This document shows, piece after piece, positions 25,632-64,000 of a stretch of 64,000 nt of DNA (the stretch's first letter is position 1; every line of letters starts with the position of its first letter). Under the pieces are notes generated by a model, which did not search any database, was not told the DNA's origin, and saw nothing but the letters and a program-made list of their open reading frames with translations. The stretch is taken from positions 124,001 through 188,000 of the IMG/VR virus record IMGVR_UViG_3300032334_001259; one strand, written 5' to 3'. The position numbers and the translations under genes were made by a program.

Positions 25632-27965
25632 TTATGCTACACGCACACTAGTGCGTTCAGTATGACTGCTGATATCATCAAGTAAACTTATCATGTCATC
25701 AAACTTGGAATTTAAAGCTGTAAGCAATTCATCACTCATATTTCTTGTATTCATTGCGGTTGGTATTTGTTCTTTAACTGTTTGTGCACTTTTTGCAGCA
25801 TCAGTTAATAATTCTGTTAAGTTTTCTGGTAATACTGCTTCTGTTCCGTGCAGCATCGCAAGGTATCCAGATTTTGGTCCAGAAGCAATTCCGCCATTGT
25901 CTAATGGTGGTAATCCGTAACTTCGACGTATATCATTAACCGCAGCATCACTGACGCTAGTCATACTTGCAGGTTGCTGATTTGGTTGTGTGTTATTACC
26001 ACTGTTCATGAACCAATCTGGCATATCAATTCTTGACCTTGTATCAGATTGTATTGCCTGTGTTCTTGCAAGCATATTTCGGTCAGATTGAGCCAACCGT
26101 TCACCCATTCTTCTTATTTCAGCCCTATTTTCATCTTCGCTTATATTACCAACAAAACCACCCGCACCAGTAATACCTGATTCAGTAAACTTTCTTATTA
26201 AACCAACAATTGCTTCGGTAACATTCTTAAATGCCCATGCAGTATTTTCTAAAACTTTACTATCAAGCATTGTTTCTTGAATTTGTTTAGCCATATCACG
26301 ACCAGCATTTGCTGCTAATATTAATTGTGTATCAAGTTGTGCTGAAGTAGCTTTTTGTTTTTCTACTGCTTGTTCAGCTGCGGTTATTGATTCTTGCGTT
26401 ACACGATTTCTTTCTTGTAGTTCACCCTTATACGCTTCTCTTAAATCTTGGACTAATCCAGTAACACCAGCCATACCAGCACGAGCTAAATCAGTGCTTG
26501 CGATTATGTCTGCTTTCATGGCACTACCCAAATCAGCATTTATTCTTCGCATACTTGCGCCATCTAACGTGCCGTCTTGAAAATTTTGCATTGCACGATT
26601 AATACTTTCACCAAAACCAGCCATATTAGACATCATATATGCACTTGCTGGTGTAATTGCTTGCCCAAATACCACAGTTTCCATGAATGCTTTACGTTGT
26701 GCAACACTCATATTCTCCATTGCGGCGATGGTGCCTAAACGTGTTTTCTCATCCATGCCAGCAAGTTTCTGCTGAAAGGCAACTTCGTTTGTTTGATCAC
26801 GAACTTCTTGTTCACGGCGTTTTGCATCTTCACCAGTAATAGCACTTATAATGCGTAAATTCTCTGCATACTTGGATGTTTGCTGTGCAACTTCTTCATT
26901 ACTACTTGTAAGACTGCCACCACTTTGACGCATTAAACCCATAGTATCAGCAATTAAACCTGCTTGTTCTCTAAATGTAAATCCAAGTTTTTGTAACTCA
27001 AGACTTACACCACTTTTACGCATGGTAGTTCCAACATCACCCATACGTTTAGCGGCTTCAGTACTGCTTATACCCAACAATGATAAATTTTGTGTGTTTG
27101 CTTTAACAACTTCTGCAAATTCAGGTAGTGTCAAGTTTAATGCTAAACCAGCGTTAGCCATATCACGTATACCACCCGCAAATACTAAACCTGCACTATT
27201 GATTAAATTAAAATTAGTATAAAGTTTATCTAATTCACTTGTTAATATCGGAATTGCAGTTTGTGCCAGTTTATCTGCGGCTTCACTTGCACTATTAAGA
27301 AAAATTCCCAATCCTTTTGCCGCTATACCAACACCAGCAGTAATAATGCCACCTATACCAGCACCCAATGCTGCAACAACTGGTGCCGCCGCCATTGCCG
27401 CATCACCAAATGTAGATAAAGCATTACCAGCTACACTTGTTGTTTTAAACAATACGCTTGCCGCCGCCGCTGTAGTAGTGCCAGCCATTCTTATGTCAGT
27501 TTCACCACCTTGATATGCTTTTACAAGTGATAATGAATTTGTATAAAGTGAACTTAAAATTGTTGTTCCGCCTTGTATTGCACCATTAAACTTTACAAGT
27601 TGTGAGTTTAATGACATTACAACGTTATTTGCATAACCTTGATTACGAATATACAAATCAAATTTTGCTTTAAACTCTGGCGGAACTACTTCTTTAACTC
27701 TATCATTAAGTGCTTGTAATTGTAACTGTGTTTCACGTGCAGTCAATCTGCCTTTGCGTTGTTCAGACAGTATTTGCTGTTCTTCACGTTGACGTTCACG
27801 CATTAAACGTTTATAAGATTCATTAGTATCTTTTGTAGTTTTATTAGTTTCTGTTAATTTTAATTTCAATGCTTCTGTAGCAAGATCTAATCCGCTGAAC
27901 TTTGTTGTTACATTTTTAAGTGCTTCATTAAAAGCAGCTAATTCGGCATCGCTTATTTCAGCCAT
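25632..27965 (-). CDS. Tape-measure-like protein (777 aa)
   Basis: Ala-rich helical protein with a central hydrophobic stretch; C-terminal GGIASGPKSGY..LHGTEAVLP motif; next to the chaperone-like gene. Confidence 0.7.
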   Translation of the reverse strand: MAEISDAELAAFNEALKNVTTKFSGLDLATEALKLKLTETNKTTKDTNESYKRLMRERQREEQQILSEQRKGRLTARETQLQLQALNDRVKEVVPPEFKAKFDLYIRNQGYANNVVMSLNSQLVKFNGAIQGGTTILSSLYTNSLSLVKAYQGGETDIRMAGTTTAAAASVLFKTTSVAGNALSTFGDAAMAAAPVVAALGAGIGGIITAGVGIAAKGLGIFLNSASEAADKLAQTAIPILTSELDKLYTNFNLINSAGLVFAGGIRDMANAGLALNLTLPEFAEVVKANTQNLSLLGISSTEAAKRMGDVGTTMRKSGVSLELQKLGFTFREQAGLIADTMGLMRQSGGSLTSSNEEVAQQTSKYAENLRIISAITGEDAKRREQEVRDQTNEVAFQQKLAGMDEKTRLGTIAAMENMSVAQRKAFMETVVFGQAITPASAYMMSNMAGFGESINRAMQNFQDGTLDGASMRRINADLGSAMKADIIASTDLARAGMAGVTGLVQDLREAYKGELQERNRVTQESITAAEQAVEKQKATSAQLDTQLILAANAGRDMAKQIQETMLDSKVLENTAWAFKNVTEAIVGLIRKFTESGITGAGGFVGNISEDENRAEIRRMGERLAQSDRNMLARTQAIQSDTRSRIDMPDWFMNSGNNTQPNQQPASMTSVSDAAVNDIRRSYGLPPLDNGGIASGPKSGYLAMLHGTEAVLPENLTELLTDAAKSAQTVKEQIPTAMNTRNMSDELLTALNSKFDDMISLLDDISSHTERTSVRVA

Positions 27966-28031: not shown

Positions 28032-28874
28032 ATGCAAAATTCAAATCCACTTGCTAAACATTTTCGTCAGCCAGCAGTATTTCTTAAACTGCCTAGTGGT
28101 GGAAAATATTGGGCACCAGATAGTTTAGACCTTCCACCAAATGGTGAAGTAGGTATTATGCCAATGACAGCCAAGGATGAAATACTATTACGCACACCAG
28201 ATGCACTTATGAATGGTCAAGGTGTAGTAAATGTAATACAAAGCTGTGTGCCTGCTATTAAAAATGCTTGGGCAATGCCAACTATAGATGTTGATGCACT
28301 TCTTATTGCTATACGTATTGCAACTTATGGTGAAACCATGGAAATGGATAGTAAATGTCCTAAATGTGAAGCAGAAAGCCGCCATGGATTAGATTTAAGT
28401 AGAGTTCTATTTGGCGTTAGAGCACCAAATTATAATCAAATTGTAGAAATAGATGGATTAAAGATTAAGTTTAAACCACTTAACTATGTGCAAAGCACTA
28501 AAAATAACATTGCTGGATTCGAAGAACAAAAGATTATACAGTTATTAAACAATGAAAACATTGATCCAGATACACGCAAAGCACAGTTTGATATGCATCT
28601 ACAAAATATTATCAAAAGTAATATAACTTTGTTGAGTGGTGCCACAGAAAGTATTACTACTGAAGACGGAACTATTGTTACTAATCCAGAGTTTATATCA
28701 CAATTCTACGATAATACTAACAACCATATTATTAAAACTGTTCAAGCAAAATTAAGAGAATTTGCTGATACAGCACAATTACCACCTACACGTGTGCAAT
28801 GTGAAGCATGTGATAACGAATATAATGTTAATGTAACTTTTGATTACGCAAATTTTTTCGAGCCACTATCTTAA
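28032..28874 (+). CDS. gp26: Baseplate hub assembly/tail chaperone (gp26-like)
   Basis: LPSGG, PMTAKDE, D.DALLIAIR..TYGE, two CxxC pairs, NFF near the C-terminus. Confidence 0.8.
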   Translation: MQNSNPLAKHFRQPAVFLKLPSGGKYWAPDSLDLPPNGEVGIMPMTAKDEILLRTPDALMNGQGVVNVIQSCVPAIKNAWAMPTIDVDALLIAIRIATYGETMEMDSKCPKCEAESRHGLDLSRVLFGVRAPNYNQIVEIDGLKIKFKPLNYVQSTKNNIAGFEEQKIIQLLNNENIDPDTRKAQFDMHLQNIIKSNITLLSGATESITTEDGTIVTNPEFISQFYDNTNNHIIKTVQAKLREFADTAQLPPTRVQCEACDNEYNVNVTFDYANFFEPLS

Positions 28875-29089
28875 CTCTCACCCAAGAAGAATTATTGAAG
28901 TTAGTGGCGGATTATGAGGGTGAAGTAAAGAGTATTAAAAAGAATATTCTTAAAATGTGTTGGTATATGCGTGGTGGTGTCACTTATGACGAACTCATGG
29001 ATATGAGCGTAACTGAACGTAACATTATCGGTAGCATTATTGAAGAAAACTTGGAAACTACTAAAAAGTCAGGTATGGCTTTCTTCTGA
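28853..29089 (+). CDS. gp51: gp51-like segment, probably made as a -1 frameshift extension of gp26
   Basis: Frame open from 28844 with no ATG/RBS at its 5' end; slippery T TTT TTC at 28853-28859; WYMRGG..Y.E...MS..ER motif. Confidence 0.65.
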   Translation, partial: FFRATILTLTQEELLKLVADYEGEVKSIKKNILKMCWYMRGGVTYDELMDMSVTERNIIGSIIEENLETTKKSGMAFF

Positions 29090-29098
29090 TCAGTTTTA

Positions 29099-29520
29099 AG
29101 ATGCCTACGGCATCTGTTCAGGGACTATCGTCCCTTCACTTTCTTTCTTTCTTTCATTTCTCTTCTAAGATTTAATATTAGTTTCATTTAGACTGGATTT
29201 TGGACATAGATTTCCTTAAGCAGGAAATCCATATCCAAACAGCTTCATTTGAGCTATCATAAGGACATTAGCAAACGGAACTTGAAACCAAGTGGGGCGG
29301 TTAGCCTGTACCCCTTCACATCCTGTAGATTTTACCAACGGACCTACTATAAACCCTTGCTAACGAACTTATATTAGTAGAGGTTGCTTTTTCTCAGAGC
29401 CTCAATCATTTAGCCTAACGTTTGGCCAAACGATTCCATCATAGCAATGTCGGGGTGCTACCAACCTTCAGTTAATACCTATTTGTGGATATGCTGCCTA
29501 AATTGCCTGTGAGCCAAAGG
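29099..29520 (-). ncRNA. Candidate large structured ncRNA of unknown family
   Basis: 463-bp gap with no ORF of 60 aa or more; several helices whose non-Watson-Crick pairs are G-U only on the minus strand; possible pseudoknot. Confidence 0.65.
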
Positions 29521-29552
29521 TGAGTTATAATCTATATATCGTAAAATTAAAA

Positions 29553-30110
29553 TTACCAGAGATTTTCTTCAAAGCCTAATTGTATTGCTATTCGTGTTTC
29601 TGGAATGTTTTCTACACTGTGTGGTACAAAAGCATTCAACAGTGTCCATTTATACAATGGAACTACAATACTGTCAATTTCTTTTACCTGGTCATACTCT
29701 AATTGTAGCCCACGTGAAAGATTAATAGAACTGTCAATTGCCTCGTAAAAAACAGTTCTATGATGTTCTCCGCCTGTTTGTATCAAATACATTAGTGTGT
29801 ATTTTCTTGTTCTGTCAATATGCGGAGCAACCATACTACCCCGCACTACTGTTGTTTGAGCCAAACTACAGCCATTAAACTTATCACTTATATTAGTTTT
29901 AATCCAATCAAATAGCTGTGGATGCAGTGATTGTTTATGAAATCTTTTGTTTTGCTCCTCTATATCATTACGAACTATAGTTCTGTCCATGTATGGTATA
30001 GTTGGATTTTGAACATAAGGATCAAATATATCTTGCGAAGTATAATTTAAAGTTAGATCAATTAACTGTGTTGGAACACTTGGTAAATTGTCTAATATCT
30101 TGTAATGCAT
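29553..30110 (-). CDS. Fe(II)/2OG-oxygenase-like (double-stranded beta-helix) protein
   Basis: HxD (PHID), distal His (PHSVEN) and Arg (TRIAI). Confidence 0.65.
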   Translation of the reverse strand: MHYKILDNLPSVPTQLIDLTLNYTSQDIFDPYVQNPTIPYMDRTIVRNDIEEQNKRFHKQSLHPQLFDWIKTNISDKFNGCSLAQTTVVRGSMVAPHIDRTRKYTLMYLIQTGGEHHRTVFYEAIDSSINLSRGLQLEYDQVKEIDSIVVPLYKWTLLNAFVPHSVENIPETRIAIQLGFEENLW

Positions 30111-30964
30111 TACTCACCCCTAATACTTTTAATAATTTTTATAAATTTGTTTTCACTTGTAATTTCTATTCTACCAAATTCATTAACAAAATCTTTCCAA
30201 GATTGGTTATTACGAATTGTCTTGATTTGATTGTTTATATTTTGAATTTGTTCTTGAGATAAGTTGGCACCAACTAAAACTATACTATCTTGCAATAGTG
30301 GTAGATCCACAGCCTTTGGTAGCAATTTATATACGCTTGGTATTGTGACACCATCTTTAACAATATCACTTTCACTACCACTAAACAAACAATTTACTTT
30401 GTCTAAATTTTTACCTAACCATTCACTATCAACAAGAGTATAATCAAATTCATTGCCTAGAATTACTTCTCTAGCCTTACCACTATTGCCTACAATTACA
30501 ATATTTGCACTGTCTCCATTAGGAAACGCACCTATGATTTTTTGAATTATATTATTGCTTGCTGTGGTAATTGCAATGTTTTTGCGAGTAGTCTTATCTA
30601 AGAAATTCTGCATTCCTAAATTAGTTTTATCTTTGCGATAACAAAGACTGTAACTATAATAGTATAGTTCTTGGATCACTTTAACATTATCACTATATGT
30701 TAGTTTACAAGCATCATCAACTACACCCCAACTACCTGTAAGATAAACTAATGGTTGTTTTTCATTCTCAATTGCATTTTTAACAACTGCACAATTTGGT
30801 AGAGCATTTATGGTATTTTTGATACCAGATTTTTCCTGTATTTCTTGTAGTATTGTTGCAGTTTTACCAGTAACTCCACCTGGTGGAACGCCAACTGTAA
30901 TATCAAAAGCATATGCATTTGATGCAAATAAAACTGCAAATAATGTTGTAATATATCGTATCAT
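30110..30964 (-). CDS. TctC/Bug-like periplasmic substrate-binding protein (divergent)
   Basis: AAGGAG RBS supports ATG 30964; signal peptide ending NAYA; VGVPPGGVT resembles TctC P..PGG.TD; follows tctA. Confidence 0.6.
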   Translation of the reverse strand: MIRYITTLFAVLFASNAYAFDITVGVPPGGVTGKTATILQEIQEKSGIKNTINALPNCAVVKNAIENEKQPLVYLTGSWGVVDDACKLTYSDNVKVIQELYYYSYSLCYRKDKTNLGMQNFLDKTTRKNIAITTASNNIIQKIIGAFPNGDSANIVIVGNSGKAREVILGNEFDYTLVDSEWLGKNLDKVNCLFSGSESDIVKDGVTIPSVYKLLPKAVDLPLLQDSIVLVGANLSQEQIQNINNQIKTIRNNQSWKDFVNEFGRIEITSENKFIKIIKSIRGE

Positions 30965-30974
30965 TCTATTCTCC

Positions 30975-32276
30975 TTAAAAATATAAATTATACACAATGT
31001 GTATAACTGAATCAAATTGTTGCGCCAGCAAAAACCCTAATACTAGTGGTAATAAGTCATGTCGTCGTAACAAAAACCCAATCGGTGCAAAAATTGCACT
31101 ACAAATCAAATAAAAAGAAAGTTGATTTGTATTATACCCCATTTGAAATACTGCAAATAATAACAAAACTATACTTAAAGTATTAAAAAGTCTTAATCTT
31201 TTAACCATTGCTTTAACTAAACTTGCAGCAAGCGGCCAACTGCAAACAAACCCAATTATATTTGCGAATCCAAAAATAGCAAATATCCACCAAAAATTAT
31301 TAACCAACCAATCATAACTGTAATTTAAACCACGAGTAGATGTAATATCATATAGTAGATATTCACTTGCATTTATTGGTATCGCAAAACAAAACAATGG
31401 AATAAAACTAGCAACCAATCCACTGTTATGTGCACTATCACTAGAAACCAAACCACGTATATCACCATCTTTGTTATATGTTTTACGATTAACAAACTTT
31501 TCAACAGCCCATGCAAAATTACTGCTAATAGTAATACCCAACGAAGGTATAAAACCACAAACAAAACCAATTATACTACCTCGCATAAAAGTATAAGGAT
31601 TTATATCAATAATGTATTTTTTGCTTTTTATGTTAACTAGATTTTTGATTTGTGCTGATGACGATAACATCATGGGTAAACTATATAGAAACACTAATAT
31701 AATAATAGTAGGTATACCGCCATATAGATAAGGAATATCAAAGGTGGCGAATTGTTGTTTTGTTACTGGATCATACCCTACTTTACCTATAAAATAACCA
31801 CTTACCAAAAATACCGCAGATAATAATATATTTTTACTAGTGAATATAGTAATAAGGTAAGTTAACAATAATATACAAAACTGTAGTTTGAAATTGTATA
31901 AAACAGAGTAATTGTTACCTATCCAAAAAATGCTACAAGCTAATATGACTGCTACAATACTACCTAAAAAACTTGCCATAGCGCCACTGCCTAATGCAGT
32001 ATTAGCTTGACCACGTAGTGTTAACGCATATCCTTCTTTGACACTTGGTAAACTAGTAGTTTCAGTTGGTATACCAAGTATTGTTGCACTAGCACCACCA
32101 AAATACTGTGTACATGTAACCATACCAATATAAAAACTTAAAACATTATGTGGGTCTAAATCAATTAATAGTGGATAAAACAATACCATAGCCAAACTGT
32201 TATGTAAGCCAGGCATAATTCCAACAAATAAACCAGTTGCGCACCCTAATAATGCAAAAAGTATTATTTCACTCAC
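30975..32276 (-). CDS. tctA: Tripartite tricarboxylate transporter large subunit TctA
   Basis: GIMPG, YFGG..ATILGIP..T.S....EGY, GFIPSLG, SDSAHNSG..FIPL..AIP; many transmembrane segments. Confidence 0.88.
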   Translation of the reverse strand: MSEIILFALLGCATGLFVGIMPGLHNSLAMVLFYPLLIDLDPHNVLSFYIGMVTCTQYFGGASATILGIPTETTSLPSVKEGYALTLRGQANTALGSGAMASFLGSIVAVILACSIFWIGNNYSVLYNFKLQFCILLLTYLITIFTSKNILLSAVFLVSGYFIGKVGYDPVTKQQFATFDIPYLYGGIPTIIILVFLYSLPMMLSSSAQIKNLVNIKSKKYIIDINPYTFMRGSIIGFVCGFIPSLGITISSNFAWAVEKFVNRKTYNKDGDIRGLVSSDSAHNSGLVASFIPLFCFAIPINASEYLLYDITSTRGLNYSYDWLVNNFWWIFAIFGFANIIGFVCSWPLAASLVKAMVKRLRLFNTLSIVLLLFAVFQMGYNTNQLSFYLICSAIFAPIGFLLRRHDLLPLVLGFLLAQQFDSVIHIVYNLYF

Positions 32277-49600: not shown

Positions 49601-50007
49601 TAAATCCTGGTGTTTATAAACTGCTATTCGGAAGTAAGGCTGATGTTCAACTGCGTGCTAATTTTCAAGTTGTTAAAAATAGCAACACTACATTAAGTGA
49701 TACAGAAATTAAAACTCGTGTCATAGATGAGATCAACCAATATTTCAGTTTAGATAATTGGGATTTTGGTGACACTTTCTATTTCAGTGAATTAGCTGGT
49801 TATCTTCACAGTAAGTTAAGTAATTACATCAGTAGCATTGTATTAGTTCCTAATGATGCAACAAGTTATTTTGGTAGTCTTTTTGAAATTCGTTGTCAAC
49901 CAAATGAAATTTTCTTAAGTGCTGCAACTGTTGATAATGTAGAAATAGTTCAAAGTGTATTGAGTGGCATTAACAGTGCTGGCATTAATCTGTATCAGGG
50001 ATATTAA
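46615..50007 (+). CDS. gp6: Baseplate wedge protein gp6-like (1130 aa)
   Basis: DF..LR..L, ENFLETA.RR.SV..LA..L.Y.P, FGDG.F..IP, Q.RMV..EDY; TAAATA at 46594-46599. Confidence 0.88.
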   Translation: MATNTRQTNIFAAEDWKKVYTTFSNADFQSYDFETLRKVLVDYIKTYYAEDFNDFIESSEYVALLDLIAFMGQSVAFRTDLNARENFLETAERRDSVLKLAKQLNYVPNRNRAANGLLKIKSVNTTENIFDVNGSNLSRVTVNWNDANNAAWVSQFTQILNAAITKSTKIGKPYASKTINNIRTEQYNIAVPNTILPIFAFNSTINDVSTNFEIVSANILNTDTISEYEPGSRGQFGMIYQNDSRGNASSNTGYFLYFKQGSLNSTDFLITEKIANRVIDVDVANINNSDIWMYEITNGAIGNNWTQVPATSSSSAIYNSTARGIRTLYSVNTRINDQISLVFGDGSFADIPIGNYRVYYRVSNGLTYRITPNDLNNVTVAVPYISSTGKPETLTITASLQYTVSNSSRRDLTNEIKIKAPQSYYSQGRMVNGEDYNTFPYTSYSDIVKVKSVNRYASGVSRGLDITDPTGKYTSTDLYARDGALYKNQYNQLLTFIYNSRNDIINVINTQILPIVQDYPMRHFYFENYTPIDFATLQPTTWERSTDDTTSSTGFFLDPADSTDTPVQIGNSTTTYRKYLQVGSLIKFTAPTGYYFDATNTLVLGSPSLRSDRTYVWASIQSITGSGATTVLVAGRNIGAVTISESIPTGAIISSVYTPFTTNFQYTTINTIVNYILNKTEFALIYDYTKTAGVNDPWTIIPITNVNQSSEFNLGTQYTTNDSSWLFLFTTDTIKYTVKYRQLDFVFGSQNQVAFINTNPQIVYDATTNTRVRDNIRLTTVNSGLSKDVNMNVYKNFTTSDGYSDTSRVYVTYPISNTNQLPTDPSIFSEATAGTPILLFYERYNDAQNLVRYRLLSTGTIIATFNTYSDINYVRNNYPVSTVFYALLDQLFYRIDITNTVTYLTNVTSSYLAYYGRQDMVFEYQHNAENTRRLDPAATNLIDSYILTRSYDESYRNYVYDNTNTVARPADLDTVQLNNSYSGLFNYKMISDEMILNPGVYKLLFGSKADVQLRANFQVVKNSNTTLSDTEIKTRVIDEINQYFSLDNWDFGDTFYFSELAGYLHSKLSNYISSIVLVPNDATSYFGSLFEIRCQPNEIFLSAATVDNVEIVQSVLSGINSAGINLYQGY

Positions 50008-50010
50008 TAA

Positions 50011-53000
50011 ATGGCAAAACGTAAAAGTGAAAACTTTTTACCACAATCTTTTAGAACATTAAGCAATCGTAGATTTTTAAATGCCACTATAGATCCACTT
50101 ATACAAGAGCCAAGTCTTAAGAAGATGTATGGTTATATTGGACAACAGGACCAAAGTCCTGTGTTTGAAAAAGGTGACTATTACATTAATGAAAACGATA
50201 GCTATAGTCAGTTCTATCAATTAGAACCAGGTGTAGTAATCAAAAAACGCCAGTATGGAACTAACACTTATAAAGTAGATAATGTTTACAACTATGTTGA
50301 TTTATTAAACCAGATTGCAGCTGACGGTGGTATTAACAACAATCATGATAGATTGTTTAGTAATCGTTATTACAGTTATAATGGTTTTATTGACCTTGAT
50401 AAGTTAACAAACTATCGTCAGTATTATTGGGTGCCAGGCGGTCCACTTACAGTTGACGTAACTGCAGAAAATACACTTACACAAAAAGATTTTTATATTC
50501 ACCGTAACAGTTATGTTGCTAATAATCAAACTGAATTACAAAGTGCTGCACTTGGTGCAACTGGTTATAGTGTGGATGGTTACAACAATGTTATTAATCC
50601 TACACTTACGCTAGTTCGTGGTGGTAGTTATAATTTTTATGTAAATCAAGACACTGACTTCTGGATTCAAACTGAAATTGGTGTAGATGGTGTAAGTAGT
50701 GTACAGAATAATATTTCAACTCGTGATGTATTGGGTGTTTCTAATAATGGAGCAAAAAGTGGAACTATAACATTTACAGTTCCATTAAGCACTGCACAAG
50801 ATTATCTTATTAACTATCCAACAATTAGCCAAGCTGTTGATTTAATTGTTGATGATGTTACTTACGAAGAATTACAAGGACAAAATTACGATACATTTAT
50901 TCTATCAAACGGATTAGATGGTGTTCGTGCATTCGATGGAAAGTATATTGTTTTAACAAGCACAACTGGTTGGGGAGATATAGCATCTACACAATGGGGT
51001 GGTGTTTGGCGTATAAATGTAGGCAGTGATCCAGCTGCAGCCAATTATCGTTTAATGAATTTAACATATATTGCAGATTGGACAGTTTTAAACAAAGTAT
51101 TTGTTACTCAAGGTGATGTATATGGTCACGTTTATGCATACAAAGATTTATTTGGTGTTATTCAAAAATTTCCAACATTAAGTGCAGCACAAAGTGTTCT
51201 TTATTATGTTGATGCTACAAATCCTCTTGTGTACGGAACTATTCAGCTTGTTGATCCACAACCAAATAGTTTACTAAATGTTAATGATATACTTGGTCGT
51301 GAAAACTATACAAGTCCAAATGGTGTACAGTTTACAAGTGGACTTAAAGTAAAGTTCACTGGCATTGTCGTGCCTGCTGAATATCAAGGTAATGAATATA
51401 TTGTTGAAGGTGTAGGTAGCAGTATTAAACTTATTAAATATGCTGACCTTGTTACACCAGAAATAATTAATACTAATCTAGGTAGTAGTTTTGGTAATAG
51501 TCGTGGTTATGATGCTGATGGCACTGGTTTCGATGGAACTACAAATAGTCCAGAACAAAAAGATTATGTAACAATTAATCGTGCTAGTATTGATGGTAAT
51601 AGTTGGAGTCGTAACAATCGTTGGTTCCATCGTGATGTGCTGCAAGCAGCTGCTGATTATAATAATGTAAGTTATAGCTTTGACAGCAATCAACAAGCAA
51701 AGCGTCCTATTATTGAGTTTTTACCTAATATAAAACTTTACAACTATGGAACAAACTATGCTGGCAGTGTCACTTGTATAGACAGTGTTACAACAAGTGC
51801 TTTTGCACAAGTAGAGGGTTTTAACAGTTATGCTGTAAAGACTGATGGTGTTTATAATAGTGATGGTATACAATTATTGAATGGACTGTCAGTTATCTTT
51901 ACACAAGAAACTGATCCTGTAAAGCGTGCAACTCTTTATCGTGTGCAGAATAATAAAACACGTGCAAGTGCAACTTATAATATACTAACAAATGCTTTTA
52001 CTAACAGTGGTGTAAATTATCTTAACATAAACAATATTGCAAATCTTGCTGTTGGTCAGCATGTTACTGGTAGTGGTATCCCAAACTTTACTACTATTAC
52101 AAGTATTGATACTGTATTTGATCGTGTTTATATAAGCAATAATTTAACACAAGATGTTCCTGCAGGAACTACAATTACATTTGATAACAGTTATGATCAA
52201 ATACATCTTGTACCTATTAAAACATTTACCAATGGCGATACTGTTGTTGCTATGGAAGGTGTTGAGAATCAAGGTAATATGTTTTATTACTTGGATGGTG
52301 AGTGGATTCGTTCACAGATTCGTAACAGTCGTCCACAATTTCCACTATTTGATGTCATCGATAAAAATGGTTATAGTTTTGGTGATCAAACAGTTTATGC
52401 AAGTAGTGACTTTAGTGGTAGTGAACTATTTGGTTATGCAGTAGGAACTGGAACACGTGACAGTGAATTAGGGTTCCCACTTGTTTATAAGAGCATTGGT
52501 AATCTTGGTGACATTGTATTTGAAAACTATTATCAAACTGATACATTTCATTATAGTTTAAATCAAGTTGACCAAGAAGAAAACATTAATCAGGGTTTTG
52601 CAGCGGTTATTGTTGGTTGGAACAACTATACTCTTGCTAATGGTTGGTATCGTGTAAGTGATAAATCTAAACAATACATTACTAAAGTTTTCACTGCAAA
52701 TGCAGTTCAACTCAATAATTTTGATCTTGGTGTTGTTTATGATAACAGCTATTATGAAAATAATATATTCGTTTATGTAAATGGTTCACTACAATCAAAT
52801 TCAACATATGCATTACAGACAAGCAGTTTAACAAGTGTAGTTGTTTTTAATCAAGATTTAAATGTAAATGATCGTGTATTTGTTAAAATTTATGGAACAA
52901 GCACAGTGTACAAAGAAACATACACTATGCCACGCAATCTCACAAACAACAGTGAGAACACAGAATTTACAACTATTACGCTAGGTCAAGTTCGTAATCA

Positions 53001-56000
53001 CTTGATTGAGATTGGTAATAATTTATTAGATTTGGTTGGCGAACCTGCTGGCGCAAATAATTTCCGTGATTTAAACTTTAACTATGTTGGTGGTAAGTTG
53101 TTACAACACAGTGCAAGTATGCGACCAGCTGCACTACTATTTGCAAACCGTGATGTAGATCCAATACAATTCATTCGTTATGCATCTGATAGCTATGGTA
53201 TCTTTAAGAATCAGTTATTGAATTATATCAGTAATACAGAGTTTCCAAATCCAACTAATTATCGTGAAAGTTTGGATATGGTATTAGCAGAGTTTAGTAA
53301 AGTGGCAAATATTGGTCAACCATTTTATTATACTGATATGGTTGGATTTGGTACTGATTTTATTAAAAATAGTTATACAGTTGCTAACACAACATATCGT
53401 CGTTATAATTTGACACAAGATTTTGCAGATGACACTAAAGGTTATCGTGCATTGTATGTCTATCTTAATGGTGTGCTATTACTTAAGAATGTAGATTATA
53501 CTATTGGAACAAGAACTATTACTATTAATGATAGTGTTACTCTTGTACGTAATGATAAGATTGAGGTGTATGAATACAATAGCACACAGGGTTGCAACAT
53601 ACCATCAACACCAACTAAACTTGGTATGTATCCAAAGTTTAAGCCTGAAATAGTAACTGATGACACATATGTAACACCAACTCTTGGTATTATCGGTCAC
53701 GATGGTAGCTTTACAAAAGGTTTTGGTGATTACCGTGATAATATTCTATTAGAATTTGAAAAACGTGTGTATAACAATATTACTACTACATATGCTGAAA
53801 ACAGTGATGTTGATTTAAGTAGTGTTGTGCCAGGTGCTTTTCGTGTTACTAATTATACAATTGATGAATGGACACAATTACTTGCACCATCATATTTGCG
53901 TTGGGCACATATTAACAACGTTGATATTTTTACTAATTCAACCGTAACAGGTGATCCATTTACATTTAACTATGCAACTGGAACTGACAAATTGTTTGCA
54001 AAACCAGTGCCTGGTTATTGGCGTGGTATCTACAAGTATTTTTATGATACCAATCACCCACATACAAAGCCATGGGAAATGTTAGGTTTTACTCAACGTC
54101 CAACATGGTGGACAAATCGTTATGGACCTGCACCATATACAAGTGAAAATGGTGTGTTGTGGAGCGACCTTGAGGCTGGTTTTGTTTATAGTGGAAATCC
54201 TAATGATTCATATTATAATACTCGTTACGCAAGACCTGGTCTTACAAGTATTATTCCTGTTGATGAGCATGGTAATTTATTAAATCCAAACCAGTCTGTA
54301 TTACTCAATTACGATGCAAATTATGCTGCACAGAATTGGGTAGTTGGAGATCAAAGTCCAGCAGAAACTGCATGGCGTCGTAGCGTAGATTATCCTTTTG
54401 CTGTTATGATGGCCTGGTGTCTCGCAAAACCAGCGGAATGGACTGCATTAAAATACAATACACGAGACCTTGCTTATAATACACTTTTAGAACAGTTTAT
54501 TAATAAAAAATATAACAATCGTCAGTTTGATTTTACTGCTACTGATGATACTGATTTTATACCAGGTTACAATGTTTGGTTGCGTGATTATCTAACAAAT
54601 AATAACCTCGATATTACTGAAAATTGGATTAACGTAGCAAATAATAGCACATTTAATCTTGTATACAAGATGGGTGCTTATACTGATAAGAGTTATCTTA
54701 CTATTGTTGCAGACCAAGTAAGTCCACAAAGCACAAACAGTAGTGTTATAATTCCGCAAGAAAACTATCAAGTTAAAGTAACAAAGAGTGCACCAGTTGC
54801 TCGTGCTGTTTATAGTGCAGTTATTGTACAGAAAGTTGTTAATGGTTATCAAGTAAGTGGATTTGACCGTGAGCGTCCATACTTCTTAACCATTCCAAGT
54901 CGTGTAAGCAATAACAACTATACTATCACTGTTGGCACTGAACGTGCTATTGTTTATATGGATAGCAGCGATAATGTATTCAGTTATCCTTATGGTAGTA
55001 TCTTTAATACAAAACAACAAGTGGTTGATTTCCTTGTAAGTTATGGTCGTTATCTACAATCACAGGGCTTTACATTCGAGGATGTTTTAGGTGATAAAAC
55101 TACTAAGAGTGATTGGGTATTAGCTTCAAAAGAATTCTTATTCTGGAATCAACAGCAGTGGGGTGACGATACAATTATTTCCTTGACACCTGCGGGCACA
55201 GATGTTAAGTTTATAAGTACATTTGGTGTTGTTGATACATTATCAAATACAAACAATTATACCAAGGTTGTTAACAGTGATAATGTTACACTAACTGGTA
55301 GTGATTATCGTGTATATCGTGATGATAACTTATTCCAACTTGAATTAAAAAATGCACAAAAAGGCGTGCATCTTATAGACTTGGCGATTATTCAGTATGA
55401 GCATACACTTATACTTGATAACAACACTGTGTTTAATGATATTTTGTATGATGAGCAAGTTGGTAGCCGACAATTCCGTCTGCGTCTTGATGGAGCAAAA
55501 ACAAATGATTGGAATGGTAGTCTTTATGCACCTGGTTTCTTTGTAAATGTAAGTGAAGTTCCGCAATGGGTTGCTTATACTGACTATTATAAGGGTGATA
55601 TTGTTCTATTCAAAAATCAGTATTATGCCGCACAAGATTTTGTACCAGGCACTGCACAATTCAAGAGTAGCAATTGGTATCCAATCAATGGTGATTTATT
55701 AAGTAAAAACCTTATTCCAAACATGGCAAGTGGTGCTGCACAGTTTATTAATTTCCATGATCCAGATAGCACTGACCTTAACAGTGCTGCTGATTTATTG
55801 AGTAAAGCCGAAACAGGATTTAGTCCACGTCAATACTTTGCTGATTTAGGGTTGGATAACACAAGCCAATACAAGTTCTACCTTGGTATGGTAAGCCAAA
55901 AAGGAACACAGGCTGTTCTTAATGCATATCTTCGTAACAAACAAAAGCGTATTGATAGTGATATTAAGTTAGTAGAACAATGGGCAATTAAACTTGATAA

Positions 56001-59000
56001 TTATGGTGGTACAAATCAAAACGATAAGTTAGAATTTAATATTGGTAATGCTATAACAATTAATAACCAATATCTATTTGAACTTATTAATCAGACTGAT
56101 CAACGTATCGCTGATACTAATACAGTTAAGCCAAGTGATTTACTTTATAAGCCACGCATTTATACAACAGATATATTTGCAAAAACACAAAACAATAAAG
56201 AAGTTATACCAACTGTTGGACCAGTAAATCCAAATGATGTTGATGCAACTGTATATGATATTAACAAAATTTATAACATAAGTCCACTTAACACTATATT
56301 AAGTGAAGGCAGTAAAGTATGGATTGCAGCGGATAGTGCTAACCAGTGGGGTGTATATCGTTTAAGTCAAACTGGTCAAGTATTTGTAACTTATATCAAT
56401 CAGATTAGTCCAACTGAATTACAGTTCACGACAAATCTGCCACATAATTTAAGTCAGTATGATTACATTATGTTGAAGAATGGTCGTCTTGCAGCACCAC
56501 AAACTGGTGGTGCAATTACCGATATGAGTGGTTTCTATCGTGTTAAGACTGTTACCAACACAACATTTAATGTGAAGATTGCTGATAATACAACTATCGG
56601 CACGGGTGCACTTAATGCAATTCTTTTTAAACTTATAAATGTTCGTTATACAACTGCTAATGACTTTACAGGCTTTGTTCCTGTTCGTGGTTGGAATAGC
56701 GGTGAAATTGTTTATATTGATGCTGGACCAGATGGTTATAATGTTTTACAGAACAGCAATAGTTGGGTTTATAGTCAAACGAAGAGTCCTGTGTTTACAA
56801 CACCAAGCGACAATTATGGTAGTAGTGTGCGAATTAATTCAACACAAGGTTTTGCTATTGTTGGTGCAAGTGTAAAAAATACAACTGGTAGTGCTTTTGT
56901 TTATGGAAAGCGTGAGGATAATTCATTCCAAGAAATTGGTATTCTAACACCTGATACTGGCGTAACTACGTTTGGTGCTAATGTAGATATTAATGATAGT
57001 AATTTTGCTTTTGTAAGTGCACCTGGTGCATATAAAGGTGTTGTATATACAGCTAATGTAAACAGTCAACAAGTCCAATTAACACAAGCAATTCACTATG
57101 ATAACCTTTATGCTATCAGTGCTGGATTTAGTCAAACAAATAACAATATTTTGTTAACTACAGTTTATAGTTTTGATAGTAATGGTAATATTGCACAACA
57201 AGCAAGTTATAGTTTAGATAATTTTGCTGTTGGTATGGGAGTAGGTGGTGCTGGTGTAAATGCTGGTACAGTTATTACAAGTATAACAACTAAAGCTCTT
57301 ACAAATACTATACAACTTGCTACATCAAATGGTAATAGTAGCATTTTCAGTATTACAACTGGTGACACCGCTACAATATTGCAAGCTAACAATAGTATTT
57401 TAAAAACACTATATGCAAATATTACAAGTAGCAATTCTAATGTTTATATTGGTAATACTGGACAAAGCATTACTGGGTTATATGCTAATGGTTCACAACC
57501 AGTATTGGGTAATGGTATTCCTGCTGGTTCATTCATTACAGCAATAAGCAATATTACTGGTTATAAAGTTATTACCTTAAACAATAATGTTTCAATAACA
57601 AACAAAAGTCTGTTAACATTTGTTCGTAGCAACGCTAACATCGTTCAATCTTCAATATCTAGTATAAGCACAACCGCAAACAATTATTTAATTGTAAGCG
57701 GAGCAACAAGTCTTTATGGTGCAGCTAATGGTTTACCAATTATTGGTGGATATCTTCCTAACAGTAGTGTTATTTCTAACCTTGTCGTCGGACCCGCTTA
57801 TAACATTCTTGGTGTAAGTGATAATGTAAATCTAAATGCATCTACAAAGATTGCAGTCTATCCCAATGTTCAACCAACAAGTAATTTTGGTTATAGCATA
57901 AGTGCAAGTGGTGATGGTAAGTGGTTATATGTTGGTGAACCAACAACAAATAGTGTTTATGTTTACAAATACACTTATGTGAATGCAAATAGCAGTCTGC
58001 GTCAAGGTGATGGAACTCAAACCAGTTTCACTTATCCAACTGGTGCAACTGGTAGTGCAAATGATATTAAAGTTTATGTAAATGGTGTTCTTAAGATACC
58101 AAACTATCATTATATTAAAACACCTGGTCAAGATATTATTACATTTGATATAGCACCAAGTGCAAGTGATATTATTAATCTTGTTTATGAAGATCACTAT
58201 GCAGAAGTTAATCGTATTGTTACTGATGATCCTGATGCAAGTGGATTTGGAACAAGTGTGAGCACCAACTATGATGGTAGCACAATTGTAATTGGTGCGG
58301 CTAATAGTAGTGTAAACAGTGTAACAACTCTTGCAAATAGTGGTAAAACATATGTATTTGACCGCACAGCAGAAATATTTGTTGCTAATGGTGTTGCAAA
58401 AACTTTCCAATTAAGTAATGCACTTAGTAGTCTTACAACAATTACAACACCTGATTTAATTACACATCCAAGTGTAACAATTGATGGTGTTGACACGGAT
58501 GCGACATTTAATTATGCTACAAACCAAGTTACATTTGCAAATGCACCTGAACGTGGTAGCACTGTTCGTGTTCAAACAAATCAATTTGTTAATACTCTTA
58601 TAAGTTATACTGATGTGGGTCAAGAAAACAGTAATTATGGTTCCGCAGTAAAAATAGATCGTGATGGCACGACGGCATTTAGTGGTGCGCCTGGTTATGC
58701 TACAAGCAGCACACAGAATGGTGCAGTATTTCGTTTAATTAATACTCCAAGAATGTATGGTAATGTAGTTGGTAGTAAAACTGGATTCAGCATTGCTGCA
58801 AATAGCACAATACGAATTAACGATTATCTTGTAACATTTGGTCAAACATTTAGACCACCATATGCTCCAATTTATTACAGCAGCAATGTTGACCAAGTAA
58901 TAACAACTATTAATAATGCTGGCATACCATATGTTACTGCTGGTAAAACACCAAACGGTGCTATCTATATTACAAGTAGTGATACTACTGCAATGCCTAT

Positions 59001-62000
59001 GTTAAAACTACGTAACGAAGGCAGTGACATTCTTGGAACATTTGGAATTACACAGTGGAAAACTGTGCAAAAACTTACAAATCCTATTGCACAAGATACT
59101 GCACGTTTTGGTGAAATACTTGCGCTAAGTCCACATGCCAATAGCATGGTTGTGGGTAGCACATTATCAAATACAAAAACAACAGTTACATTTGATAGCA
59201 AGACTACTACATTCGACCGTTTTGGAACACGTTTCCGTGATACTGTGTATCGCAGTGGTGCCGCTCACCTTTATGAATATCAAGCAGTTGCAAATGAAGA
59301 CTATCAAAACTATGGTAGCTTTGCTTATGCAAGTCTTGTTCAAGATCAATTTGCAAATAGCTATGACCGTTATGCAAGTGGTGTAGATATCAGCGATAAC
59401 TTCTTGATGGTTGGTGCACCACATGCACATGTACTTGGTAATCCAGTTGGTGCAATGTATATATACTACAATCAAAATGCGGCTCCTGTGTGGCAAACTA
59501 TACGCAGTGGTGGTATTGATTTTGATAGTCGCAATATTGACCGTGTTTACTTGTATAATAGCACAACTGCAAGATTAATTGCTGAATTACCAGTGCTTGA
59601 TTTACCTTACGGTTATCTACCAAATAGCAGTGAAAGTTATATTGATTATACTATTAACTATGATCCTGCTGTTTATAATCAAGCACCAACAACTACAAGT
59701 TTCAGTTTTGATCGTAAAAATGCTTGGGGCAAGCAACAAGTTGGTAAATTGTGGTGGGATATTAACAGTATCAAGTATTATGATAATACACAAGGCGATA
59801 ACGTTAACCGCTTTAATTATTGGGGTCTTGCTTTCCCTAATAGCACAATAAATGTTTATGAATGGATTGAAAGTGATGTTCTACCAAAGAATTACAGTGG
59901 TAGCAGTGTAAACAATACACCACTTTATACAGTTAATGATGTTTATTGTTCTCAAGTTACCGTTGATGAAAAAACTGGACAAGCGGTTACAAAATATTAT
60001 TTCTGGGTTAAGAATAGTATTCTTGCTAACACAAAGCGTCCAAGTGCACGTGAAATACAAACTGCACTTATAAGTCCACGTAACAACAGTGAACCATTTG
60101 CAGCAGTGATTAATAAAAATGCAATCGGTATATTTAATGCACAAAATCTTGTAAGCATTGATACCAATCTTGCCATTGAATATAAGAACACTCTTGAACC
60201 ACAACTTATCCATAGTGAATGGACTATGTTTGACGATGGCACTGACTTGGGCGTTGCTGATGAGTTCTTGAATAAGTTGAATGATAGTTTAACTGGTCAG
60301 GATGTCAGTGGTCGTATTGTTCCAGATTTTAACCTTCCTATTGGTCAAAAGTATGGTATGAGTGTTGATTTGCGTCAGAGTTTATTCAAAGACAATTACT
60401 ATGCACGTATGTTGTTTATTGAAAAGATAAATCAGATTTGCATCAAATATCCAATGGTGTTGACTCGTGTTGATGCTATTGCTCAACTTAACAACATTGA
60501 TCCGATTCCCGACTCTACTGAATATACACTTACTGTCAATAACTTAACAGAACTAGGCTATATAAACACTGTAGCCTATCCTATCGGCACACGTGTTCTT
60601 GTAATACAAGATAGCAATAGTTATAACAATGGTTGGAGTTTGTTTACTTTAGTGTTAAATTCAACAAGTTATGCAAGACGTTGGGAATATGTTCGTGTTC
60701 AAACTTATAATGTTAATGATTATTGGACATATGCTGATTGGTATAGCACAAAATACAACCCACAAGCACCATATAACTATACAGTTACAACTGACAATGA
60801 TATTGCTAACCTTCAATTAAATGTAAATGATTTAATTTATGTAACAAATAGTAATAGCGGTGGTTGGAAGTTAGTTCTTGTAAACACTAATGATCTTGAA
60901 TTAGTTGCACAACAAAACGCAACTATACAATTCACTTCAAATCTGTATAGTCTTGTTGATGCTGCACAAGGATTCCAAACAAATAGTTTCCAAAGTGTAG
61001 GATTTGATACTGACAGTAATCTTGAATTTAGTGCAATATTTGCTGTGATTCGTGATTATCTTCTTACTAATGAATATCGCAGTGAATATAAAGAAACTAT
61101 TGCACTTCTTATTGATATTGTTGCAAGTCAACATCAACAAACTGATTGGATGATGAAAACAAGTCTTGTTGATTTATATCATCGTGTTCGTGGTTTGGAT
61201 CAGCTACCTGTTTATCTGCCACAACCAGAAAATACAGTAACTGATTTCTTCAATGAAGTTAAACCATTCCATACAAAACTAAAACAATATGTTGCAAGAT
61301 ATGATAACAGCAATGATATTGATACAGCATATGCAAGTATTACTGACTTTGACTTGCAACCATATAAGAATGCATTAACTGGCAAGTATCGTAGTCCACA
61401 ATTAGGTAACAGTCTTGATACTGATACTTTGAATAATACAGCAGTGTATCAACCATGGGTAAACAATCACAAATATAGTATTGATCTTGTTACAATGGTT
61501 GATGGTGGTGCTGGTTATGATGGTTCAACTACTGCGGCTGTAATTGGCGATGGAAGTGGTGCTATTGTTAAACCTTATATTCTTAATGGTAGTGTTTATA
61601 CAATTGAAGTTATAAATGCAGGTCAAGATTATACCTATGCTACTGTAGAAATTTATGGTATTGGTGTTGGTGCCAAAGCTGAAGCAGTTTTAGGAAGCAG
61701 TCTTGCACGAAATATTAATGCAACAGTTAAATTTGACCGTAACCAATATTTTAATAATATACAAGATTGGGCGGCTAACACAAGTTATACAATTGATACT
61801 GTTGTTGTATATAATGCAACACCTTATAGATGTATTACTGCACACACAAGTGGTTCTACATTTGATGCAACCAAGTTCTTGGTATTGATTGTTAAAGTTT
61901 GGTATCCAAAAACTGATTATAATGTTGGTGATATAGTTGTTTATAATAATAGTAGCTATGTTGTTGATACAGCATTTACAAGTGATCTTATATTCAGTAG

Positions 62001-63999: not shown

Positions 64000-64000
64000 A

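Follow-up and report, generated by a model that had tools for sequence, protein, structure and literature searches.

The single T4 gp26/gp51-family gene of a freshwater giant phage very probably uses a deeply conserved programmed -1 ribosomal frameshift, T_TTT_TTC, located at its end, to produce a short and a C-terminally extended tail-hub assembly protein. This suggests that the separate genes 26 and 51 of phage T4 are the un-recoded, duplicated version of the same two-protein design. We put the probability of the frameshift at roughly 0.85; the comparative evidence is very strong, although the shift is inferred from sequence and has not been observed as protein. The analysed window, a stretch of 64,000 nucleotides (positions 124,001 to 188,000 of IMG/VR record IMGVR_UViG_3300032334_001259), carries the gene on the plus strand at 28032-28874. 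In the proposed mechanism, most ribosomes read this frame and release a 280-aa protein, the equivalent of T4 gp26, whereas a fraction shift when tRNA-Phe sits on UUU in the P site and on UUC in the A site of U_UUU_UUC, with both tRNAs slipping back one base onto UUU_UUU. These ribosomes continue in the -1 frame from CGA (28859) to TGA (29089) and yield a predicted 352-aa protein, consisting of residues 1-276 and a 76-aa helical domain, which would be the equivalent of T4 gp51. Both products are proposed to act as assembly factors for the central hub and tape-measure part of the contractile tail and to be made in a fixed ratio.

The sequence-only reading, which had proposed a -1 frameshift fusing a gp26-like to a gp51-like ORF, described items that are all in the sequence at the stated coordinates. 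The gene ends AAT TTT TTC GAG CCA CTA TCT TAA (stop at 28872-28874), the heptamer T_TTT_TTC (Phe275-Phe276) occupies 28853-28859 in the zero frame, and a second in-frame heptamer, A_AAT_TTT, overlaps it at 28850-28856. The slip site is followed by an invariant G at 28860, although PA5oct has an A after the heptamer. The last upstream stop of the -1 frame is a TGA at 28841-28843 and the frame is then open from 28844 to the TGA at 29087-29089, which, with the zero-frame stop, confines the shift to 28844-28874. From the slip site, the -1 frame reads FFRATILTLTQEELLKLVADY...; the predicted zero-frame C-terminus is ...DYANFFEPLS, and the predicted junction peptide of the fusion ends ...DYANFFR, followed by ATILTLTQEELLK. 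The 280-aa product matches Pfam PF12322 (T4_baseplate; 1.8e-20, 74 bits against a cut-off of 24.5, residues 20-277 on profile positions 9-219) and phrog_150 baseplate hub (3.8e-24), confirming the gp26-like label, and the assignment to a T4-related jumbo lineage is likewise right. It is the only PF12322 gene in the complete 338-kb genome, the extension is also present in a single copy, and the AlphaFold model of the zero-frame product has a pLDDT of 86.6. C109, C112, C257, C260, F275, and F276 are invariant or nearly so in two alignments, while C257 and C260 are no longer among the conserved columns listed for a wider alignment.

The slip site is conserved where synonymous change would be free. 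The octamer TTTTTTCG was in frame at the terminal Phe-Phe in 87/87 first-round loci (the window, 6 cultured jumbo phages, and 80 IMG/VR contigs; 27-92% aa identity) and in 30 further metagenome loci. The site is also found in PA5oct (TTTTTTC followed by A), Vibrio 2.275.O and SCTP-2, and in five T4-like phages, namely the cyanophages S-WAM1 and P-HM1, OLIVR5, LPCS28, and KVP40-like D486. The preceding codon varies (AAT, AGT, CAT, ACT, GCT, CGT, GAT) but always ends in T, whereas only 3 of 121 (2.5%) other Phe-Phe pairs in the same genes share the T|TTT|TTC spelling. Many of these loci are related, however, and the counts do not represent independent events. Rare variants mostly remain slippery: T_TTT_TTA keeps the Arg as AGA in one locus (L094), T_TTT_TTT occurs in Xoo-sp13, RAS14, and RsoM2USA, and A_AAT_TTT is found in the loci numbered L121-125. 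One contig carries T_TTT_TCC, which is not a canonical heptamer. In addition, all-pyrimidine heptamers with a UUN A-site codon are among the more shift-prone classes in E. coli (PMC4066793).

The reading frames downstream of the site behave as expected for a shift. The zero-frame tail is short and variable (1-12 codons in nearly all relatives, 22 in LR756511), while the -1 frame stays open for 59-84 codons and is conserved from its first codon (FFR-x-R-L-L ... W-Y-M-R-G-G ... E-R ... T-K-K-S-G-L-P-F-F). Across 81 relatives, the overlap of the two frames is 13-79 nt (median 31) and always contains the heptamer. In the window, the extension spans 28859-29089 (76 codons plus TGA) and is predicted to form a helical hairpin (pLDDT 89.9). 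Two terminator-like hairpins (29100-29114 and 29121-29134) followed by a T-rich run lie just after the -1 frame stop; both covary among relatives, and they place the end of the transcription unit after the extension rather than after the zero-frame stop. In-frame fusions also exist in nature: about 25 of the top 150 database hits to the extension are 319-351-aa proteins made of a gp26-like domain plus the extension, and one contig carries a short and a long paralogue in tandem, the short one having lost the cysteines.

A downstream RNA structure probably raises the shift rate. The 75 nt after the heptamer fold with a mean z of -3.07, compared to -0.05 to -0.7 for seven control windows in the same genes, and 61/81 relatives share a stem between alignment columns 13-20 and 76-83, which starts 6 nt after the heptamer and displays compensatory pairs (U-A 41 / C-G 24 at one position and G-C 40 / A-U 34 at another). 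This stem emerged only when per-sequence folds were mapped onto alignment columns; RNAalifold found no single consensus structure over all 81 sequences on either the MAFFT or the codon-guided alignment. The clade of the window and the RaK2-like phages lack this stem. The window instead has a different, weaker candidate hairpin at 28862-28908, in which GCCACUA (28862-28868) pairs with UAGUGGC (28902-28908), with inner pairing (MFE -12 kcal/mol, z = -2.08, 6/200 shuffles fold as well). It begins only 2 nt after the heptamer, closer than the usual 5-9 nt, but the same outer stem occurs in the close clade of the window with one compensatory G-C to U-A change. An Rfam search of 28700-29700 found nothing real.

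Among the alternatives, the one that survives best, though it is unlikely, is that the downstream piece is a separate 64-aa protein, translated from the TTG at 28895-28897 or by termination-reinitiation after the gp26 stop, and that the T run is merely how Phe-Phe happens to be spelled. This TTG is the first canonical start codon in the -1 frame (there is no ATG before codon 35) and is preceded, 5 nt upstream, by the purine run AAGAAG (28884-28889), so some independent initiation cannot be excluded. GenBank annotators call separate small ORFs in Phosso, BF, 121Q, XaC1, Atu_ph07, P-HM1, D486, and OLIVR5, a few relatives have an ATG 1-2 codons after the slip site (FFRM...), and stop/start overlaps often fall in the -1 frame anyway. 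However, the called starts are at different, non-homologous positions. In relatives, the first ATG/GTG/TTG lies anywhere from codon 3 to codon 38, being at least 28 codons in for about 19 sequences, and the first ATG lies at least 32 codons in for 55/81. The peptide is nonetheless conserved from the very first -1 codon, the T|TTT|TTC spelling is 81/81 at this site against 3/121 elsewhere, and natural proteins carry the piece fused in frame to the gp26-like domain, an architecture shared by T4 gp51.

It is similarly improbable that RNA polymerase slips on the T6 run and adds one U to a fraction of transcripts, although this judgement rests on sequence comparisons without read data. The site is a homopolymer run and RsoM2USA has nine T's there, a length at which transcriptional slippage appears to operate in other systems (PMC5009743). 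Yet six T's is short for productive slippage, and L121-125 have only five T's but keep a canonical tandem-slip heptamer. The motif is conserved in register with the reading frame, including the base before the run, which matters for tRNA re-pairing but not for polymerase, and in relatives a covarying stem lies downstream at ribosome-entrance spacing. Finally, a single 352-aa gene split by a homopolymer sequencing error or a recent mutation can be all but dismissed: homopolymer indels are common assembly errors and in-frame versions exist in other phages, but more than 120 independently assembled loci, including finished genomes of cultured phages from many laboratories, have the same out-of-frame arrangement, and the in-frame versions have a different, non-slippery junction (AGT TTC AGA), at least one of them sitting beside a separate short paralogue.

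Programmed -1 frameshifting in tail-assembly chaperone genes is regarded as nearly universal in long-tailed phages, whereas, to our knowledge, no such pair has been described for T4, the best-studied contractile-tail phage. A 2016 review of recoding does not mention gp26 or gp51 (PMC5009743), and none of the papers or GenBank records we examined reports this frameshift. We consider it about as likely as not that the gp26/gp51 locus is the missing G/GT-type recoded chaperone of the whole T4 superfamily, covering cyanomyoviruses and KVP40-like, Pootjes-like, and RaK2/PA5oct-like jumbo phages, and that it was built independently on an unrelated zinc-ribbon protein fold. In this scenario, T4 and its close kin, and separately at least one uncultured lineage, replaced the frameshift by duplicating the gene into a short (26) and a long (51) paralogue, and the 'catalytic' gp51 would be the minor, extended form that couples the tape-measure and hub complex to its next assembly partner. 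The locus would then be a clean natural example of a frameshift resolved by gene duplication, and hub assembly in T4 could be approached with the G/GT logic. Annotation is also affected, given that hundreds of phage genomes annotate the extension as a free-standing small ORF with an arbitrary start, or not at all.

The likeness to G/GT of phage lambda (also P2 E/E+E', Mu, and most long-tailed phages; Xu, Hendrix and Duda, 2004; PMC5009743) is architectural. In both, a -1 shift (here inferred) on an X_XXY_YYZ heptamer near the 3' end of a tail-assembly gene yields a short and a C-terminally extended protein with a common N-terminal part, and the gene lies beside the tape-measure gene (here a putative one); the T4 counterparts are listed as assembly chaperones, with gp51 listed as absent from the finished particle (PMC3004832). 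By contrast, we found no sequence or fold relationship: the protein belongs to PF12322 with a split Cys4 zinc ribbon, Pfam and PHROG searches gave no chaperone hit, a PDB sequence search gave nothing, and Foldseek against PDB (both pieces) and VIA-align (gp26-like domain) returned only generic helical matches. The short product is also much larger than G, and the extension is only 76 aa. In the window, the gene is divergent from, not upstream of, the 777-aa putative tape-measure gene (25632-27965, minus strand), and the tube and sheath genes lie about 85 kb away. The putative tape-measure protein has no family hit of its own, but its RaK2 orthologue is annotated as similar to a tail tape-measure protein, its PA5oct orthologue is a virion protein by MS, and the same divergent neighbour is seen in 5 of 6 cultured jumbo phages, in PA5oct, SCTP-2, and RsoM2USA, and in the IMG/VR loci. 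In LPCS28, S-WAM1, OLIVR5, and D486, the order is tube-family gene, gp26/51, and a large gene of unconfirmed tape-measure identity. T4 genetics places gp26 and gp51 at hub formation, and the tape-measure chaperone role suggested by the sequence-only reading stays an inference; a complex prediction of the tape-measure protein (residues 78-777) with the gp26-like protein gave no answer (score 0.01) and counts neither for nor against binding.

T4 gp26 (8.8e-64) and gp51 (3.9e-52, residues 1-201 of 249) both belong to PF12322 and have the same C-terminal Phe-Phe or Val-Phe boundary, gp26 matching the short product and gp51, a PF12322 domain plus a ~50-aa tail, matching the architecture of the long one. 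T4 encodes these forms as two diverged, divergently transcribed genes without a frameshift, and T4 gp26, which lacks an extension and is followed by gene 25, has a non-slippery G_TTC_TTT. A profile of T4-like extensions aligns to gp51 residues 200-243 (15.9 bits), directly after the PF12322 domain, whereas similarity between the extension of the window and the gp51 tail is weak (hhalign 15%, E 0.0018; 2.6% against whole gp51). A broad extension HMM scored at noise level against T4-like extensions and gp51; the extensions of L121-124 were cut in the wrong frame in this analysis, which does not affect the conclusion. The gp51-like label of the sequence-only reading holds at the level of architecture and field annotation; the small cyanophage ORFs annotated 'gp51' are this same -1 extension. 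The 'gp26' and 'gp51' of cyanomyoviruses, KVP40-like vibriophages, and Pootjesviridae share the slip octamer TTTTTTCG or heptamer T_TTT_TTC at the same Phe-Phe and a -1 continuation starting FFR/FFL, and 582 phage records hold this extension next to gp26. These are annotated as two independent genes, and their extension is shorter (59-67 aa) and of the T4 gp51-tail type rather than the WYMRGG...GLPFF type found in the lineage of the window. Lastly, in E. coli dnaX (tau/gamma), which uses A_AAA_AAG and an upstream Shine-Dalgarno-like stimulator, a tandem-slip heptamer plus a downstream stem-loop about 6 nt away (the spacing in most relatives here, but not in the window) sets a fixed ratio of two nested products, as is proposed here, but there the shifted product is the shorter one.

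ORF 28032-28874 (+) encodes a protein of 280 aa and ends AAT TTT TTC GAG CCA CTA TCT TAA. The zero-frame heptamer T_TTT_TTC lies at 28853-28859, and a second canonical in-frame heptamer, A_AAT_TTT, overlaps it at 28850-28856. The latter is present wherever the preceding codon is AAT. The -1 frame is closed by TGA at 28841-28843 and then open to TGA at 29087-29089, whereas its first canonical start codon is TTG at 28895, with no early ATG. A tandem -1 slip would give a product of 276 + 76 = 352 aa, reading ...DYANFF and then, past the slip site, RATILTLTQEELLK... The sequence-only reading, which had placed the heptamer and the opening of the -1 frame at these positions and predicted products of 280 and ~352 aa, is therefore accurate in every detail. 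The 280-aa protein belongs to Pfam PF12322 T4_baseplate (1.8e-20) and to PHROG 150 'baseplate hub', while the 76-aa piece has no family hit.

The window comprises bases 124001-188000 of a complete 338,435-bp virus record with terminal repeats, and only freshwater metagenomes hold the sequence. The neighbouring genes are portal, protease, major capsid, baseplate wedge, late sigma factor and gp46/47-like genes, and a 777-aa putative tape-measure gene is transcribed divergently from the gp26-like gene. Directly after the extension lies a noncoding stretch (29090-29510) that begins with two terminator-like hairpins (29100-29114 and 29121-29134), followed by about 370 nt that are 85-98.6% identical in relatives whose gp26-like protein is only 60-92% identical. 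RNAalifold gives 67 pairs for this stretch, 20 of them with compensatory changes, and no Rfam family matches, making it a candidate new structured RNA. Further on, the genome encodes a TctA-family tricarboxylate transporter membrane protein (30975-32276 (-); PF01970, 2.2e-62), an unusual auxiliary gene for a phage, next to a 301-aa ORF (30110-31015 (-)) that has no Pfam hit and, by our reading, a signal-peptide-like N-terminus. There are few ORFs of 90 aa or more in the last 14 kb (50007-64000), and no tRNA genes were found anywhere in the window.

A tblastn search found the protein in 95 phage records, all RaK2/121Q/PA5oct/Atu_ph07-type jumbo phages at under 35% identity. In six of these, the same heptamer sits at the same C-terminal Phe-Phe, the zero-frame tail after it varies from 1 to 11 codons, and the -1 frame reads FFR-x-x-L-L... 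When 80 IMG/VR loci (41-92% identity) were added, the octamer TTTTTTCG was present in 87 of 87 sequences, and a metagenome scan added 30 more. The codon before the run differs (AAT, AGT, CAT, ACT, GCT, CGT, GAT) but always ends in T. In contrast, of 121 other Phe-Phe dipeptides in the same genes, only 3 are spelled T_TTT_TTC. The region where the two frames overlap is 13-79 nt long (median 31) and always holds the motif. Some IMG/VR and metagenome loci are the same contigs and all are related, so that these counts are not independent events; at these divergences, however, synonymous sites are saturated. The exceptions are instructive: T_TTT_TTA occurs in locus L094, with the following Arg kept as AGA; T_TTT_TTT occurs in Xoo-sp13, RAS14 and RsoM2USA; and A_AAT_TTT followed by TCA TAA is the only slip motif left in the lineage of loci L121-125. 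One non-canonical T_TTT_TCC was found, on a 1.5-kb contig (L112).

The extension aligns without gaps from its first residue, with the conserved motifs FFR, L-L, W-Y-M-R-G-G, E-R and T-K-K-S-G-L-P-F-F. The first ATG lies at least 32 codons in for 55 of 81 unique sequences, and the first ATG/GTG/TTG lies at least 28 codons in for about 19. GenBank annotators have called small ORFs with starts at unrelated positions, or nothing at all in Pseudomonas phage PA5oct, where the 75-codon -1 extension after T_TTT_TTC (positions 2034-2270 of L126, the PA5oct sequence) is not annotated in the RefSeq record. Independent initiation therefore cannot explain the conserved N-terminal part.

The 75 nt after the heptamer fold much better than shuffles, with a mean z = -3.07 and 73% of sequences below -2, while seven control windows in the same genes give mean z between -0.05 and -0.72. 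In 61 of 81 sequences, columns 13-20 (GGCUYUUR, starting 6 nt after the heptamer) pair with columns 76-83. There is clear compensation: the wobble base of a Leu codon covaries with a Lys/Arg second position (U-A 41, C-G 24, C-A 14), and a second Leu wobble base covaries with another partner (G-C 40, A-U 34). The window's own clade and the RaK2-like phages lack this stem. The window instead has GCCACUA (28862-28868) paired with UAGUGGC (28902-28908), a hairpin of -12 kcal/mol (z = -2.08) that starts only 2 nt after the heptamer and is shared by the window's close relatives with one compensatory change. We regard the stimulator as supported for most relatives and only probable for the window. 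In 25-34 of 81 relatives (L014, L020, L027 and others), the U-run of the heptamer itself (codon alignment columns 0-6) pairs in the MFE fold with a GAAGAAA (Lys-Glu-Glu codons) about 90 nt downstream (columns 87-96, approximately), which could be incidental or could be part of the signal.

Fusions of the two parts also occur naturally. A profile of the extension, searched against 1.84 billion proteins, gave 546 hits, most of which are small ORFs. About 25 of the best 150, however, are proteins of 319-351 aa with the extension at the very C-terminus; their N-terminal parts are gp26-like, and the junction reads x-F-R-x-K/R-I/L-L. One uncultured phage contig (L141) carries two PF12322 genes in tandem (411-2389). 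The short gene (294 aa) keeps a relic T_TTT_TTC, but its -1 frame closes after one further codon and it has lost the cysteines, whereas the long gene (351 aa) has an in-frame, non-slippery junction. This arrangement parallels T4 genes 26 and 51: T4 gp26 (208 aa) and T4 gp51 (249 aa) both match PF12322 over the full profile and align to each other, and gp51 continues for about 50 aa after the domain. A profile of the -1 extensions of S-WAM1, OLIVR5 and LPCS28 aligns to gp51 residues 200-243, exactly at that boundary (15.9 bits). Five T4-like phages, namely cyanophages S-WAM1 and P-HM1, Pootjesviridae OLIVR5, Straboviridae LPCS28 and KVP40-like D486, carry T_TTT_TTC at the terminal Phe-Phe and a 59-67-aa -1 continuation. 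In 582 phage records this extension is found beside gp26, usually annotated 'baseplate hub assembly catalyst / gp51'. These small ORFs of cyanomyoviruses, KVP40-like vibriophages and Pootjesviridae overlap the end of gp26 and share the same T_TTT_TTC slip site, and their annotated ATG starts lie inside the conserved -1 peptide. The 'gp51-like' label proposed in the sequence-only reading is thus right in architecture and in current annotation, although direct similarity between the window-type extension and the T4-type tail is only weak (hhalign 15%; noise in HMMER). The window's genome has a single PF12322 gene and a single extension.

Taken together, we consider this to be a real, conserved programmed -1 frameshift signal, with a probability of about 0.85, although no protein-level proof exists. 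Independent initiation of the downstream piece is disfavoured by the conservation of the slip site, by coding from the first -1 codon and by the natural fusions. Transcriptional slippage is, without read data, likewise disfavoured: the run is short, the motif is conserved in register with the reading frame, the A_AAT_TTT variant keeps a tandem-slip heptamer, and a stem lies at ribosome-entrance spacing. Assembly error is excluded by more than 120 concordant loci. None of the roughly 25 GenBank records we inspected annotates a joined CDS here, the jumbo-phage genome papers do not contain the word 'frameshift', and a 2016 recoding review does not mention gp26 or gp51. Full-text searches likewise found no description of a gp26/gp51 frameshift, but these did not extend to the subscription literature, and prior description cannot be ruled out.

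In T4, gp26 and gp51 are listed as hub assembly chaperones, and gp51 is described as essential, of unknown function and absent from the particle (Leiman et al., 2010; PMC3004832). In T4-like relatives the gene order is tube-family gene, gp26/51, then a large gene of tape-measure size, while in jumbo phages the gene abuts the putative tape-measure gene. This resembles the lambda G/GT pattern (PMC5009743), and function as a hub and tape-measure assembly chaperone pair is likely but untested. The proteins are nonetheless unrelated to known chaperones: confident AlphaFold models of the 280-aa domain (pLDDT 86.6) and of the predicted helical-hairpin extension (pLDDT 89.9) find no fold match, and no solved relative exists. 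That the pair works like G/GT is therefore a reasoned inference, whereas membership of the G/GT family is not supported. While the mechanism is classical, as is the design of a short plus an extended chaperone, what appears to be new is the protein family, the breadth across the T4 superfamily, and the reading of T4 genes 26 and 51 as a duplicated, un-recoded version.
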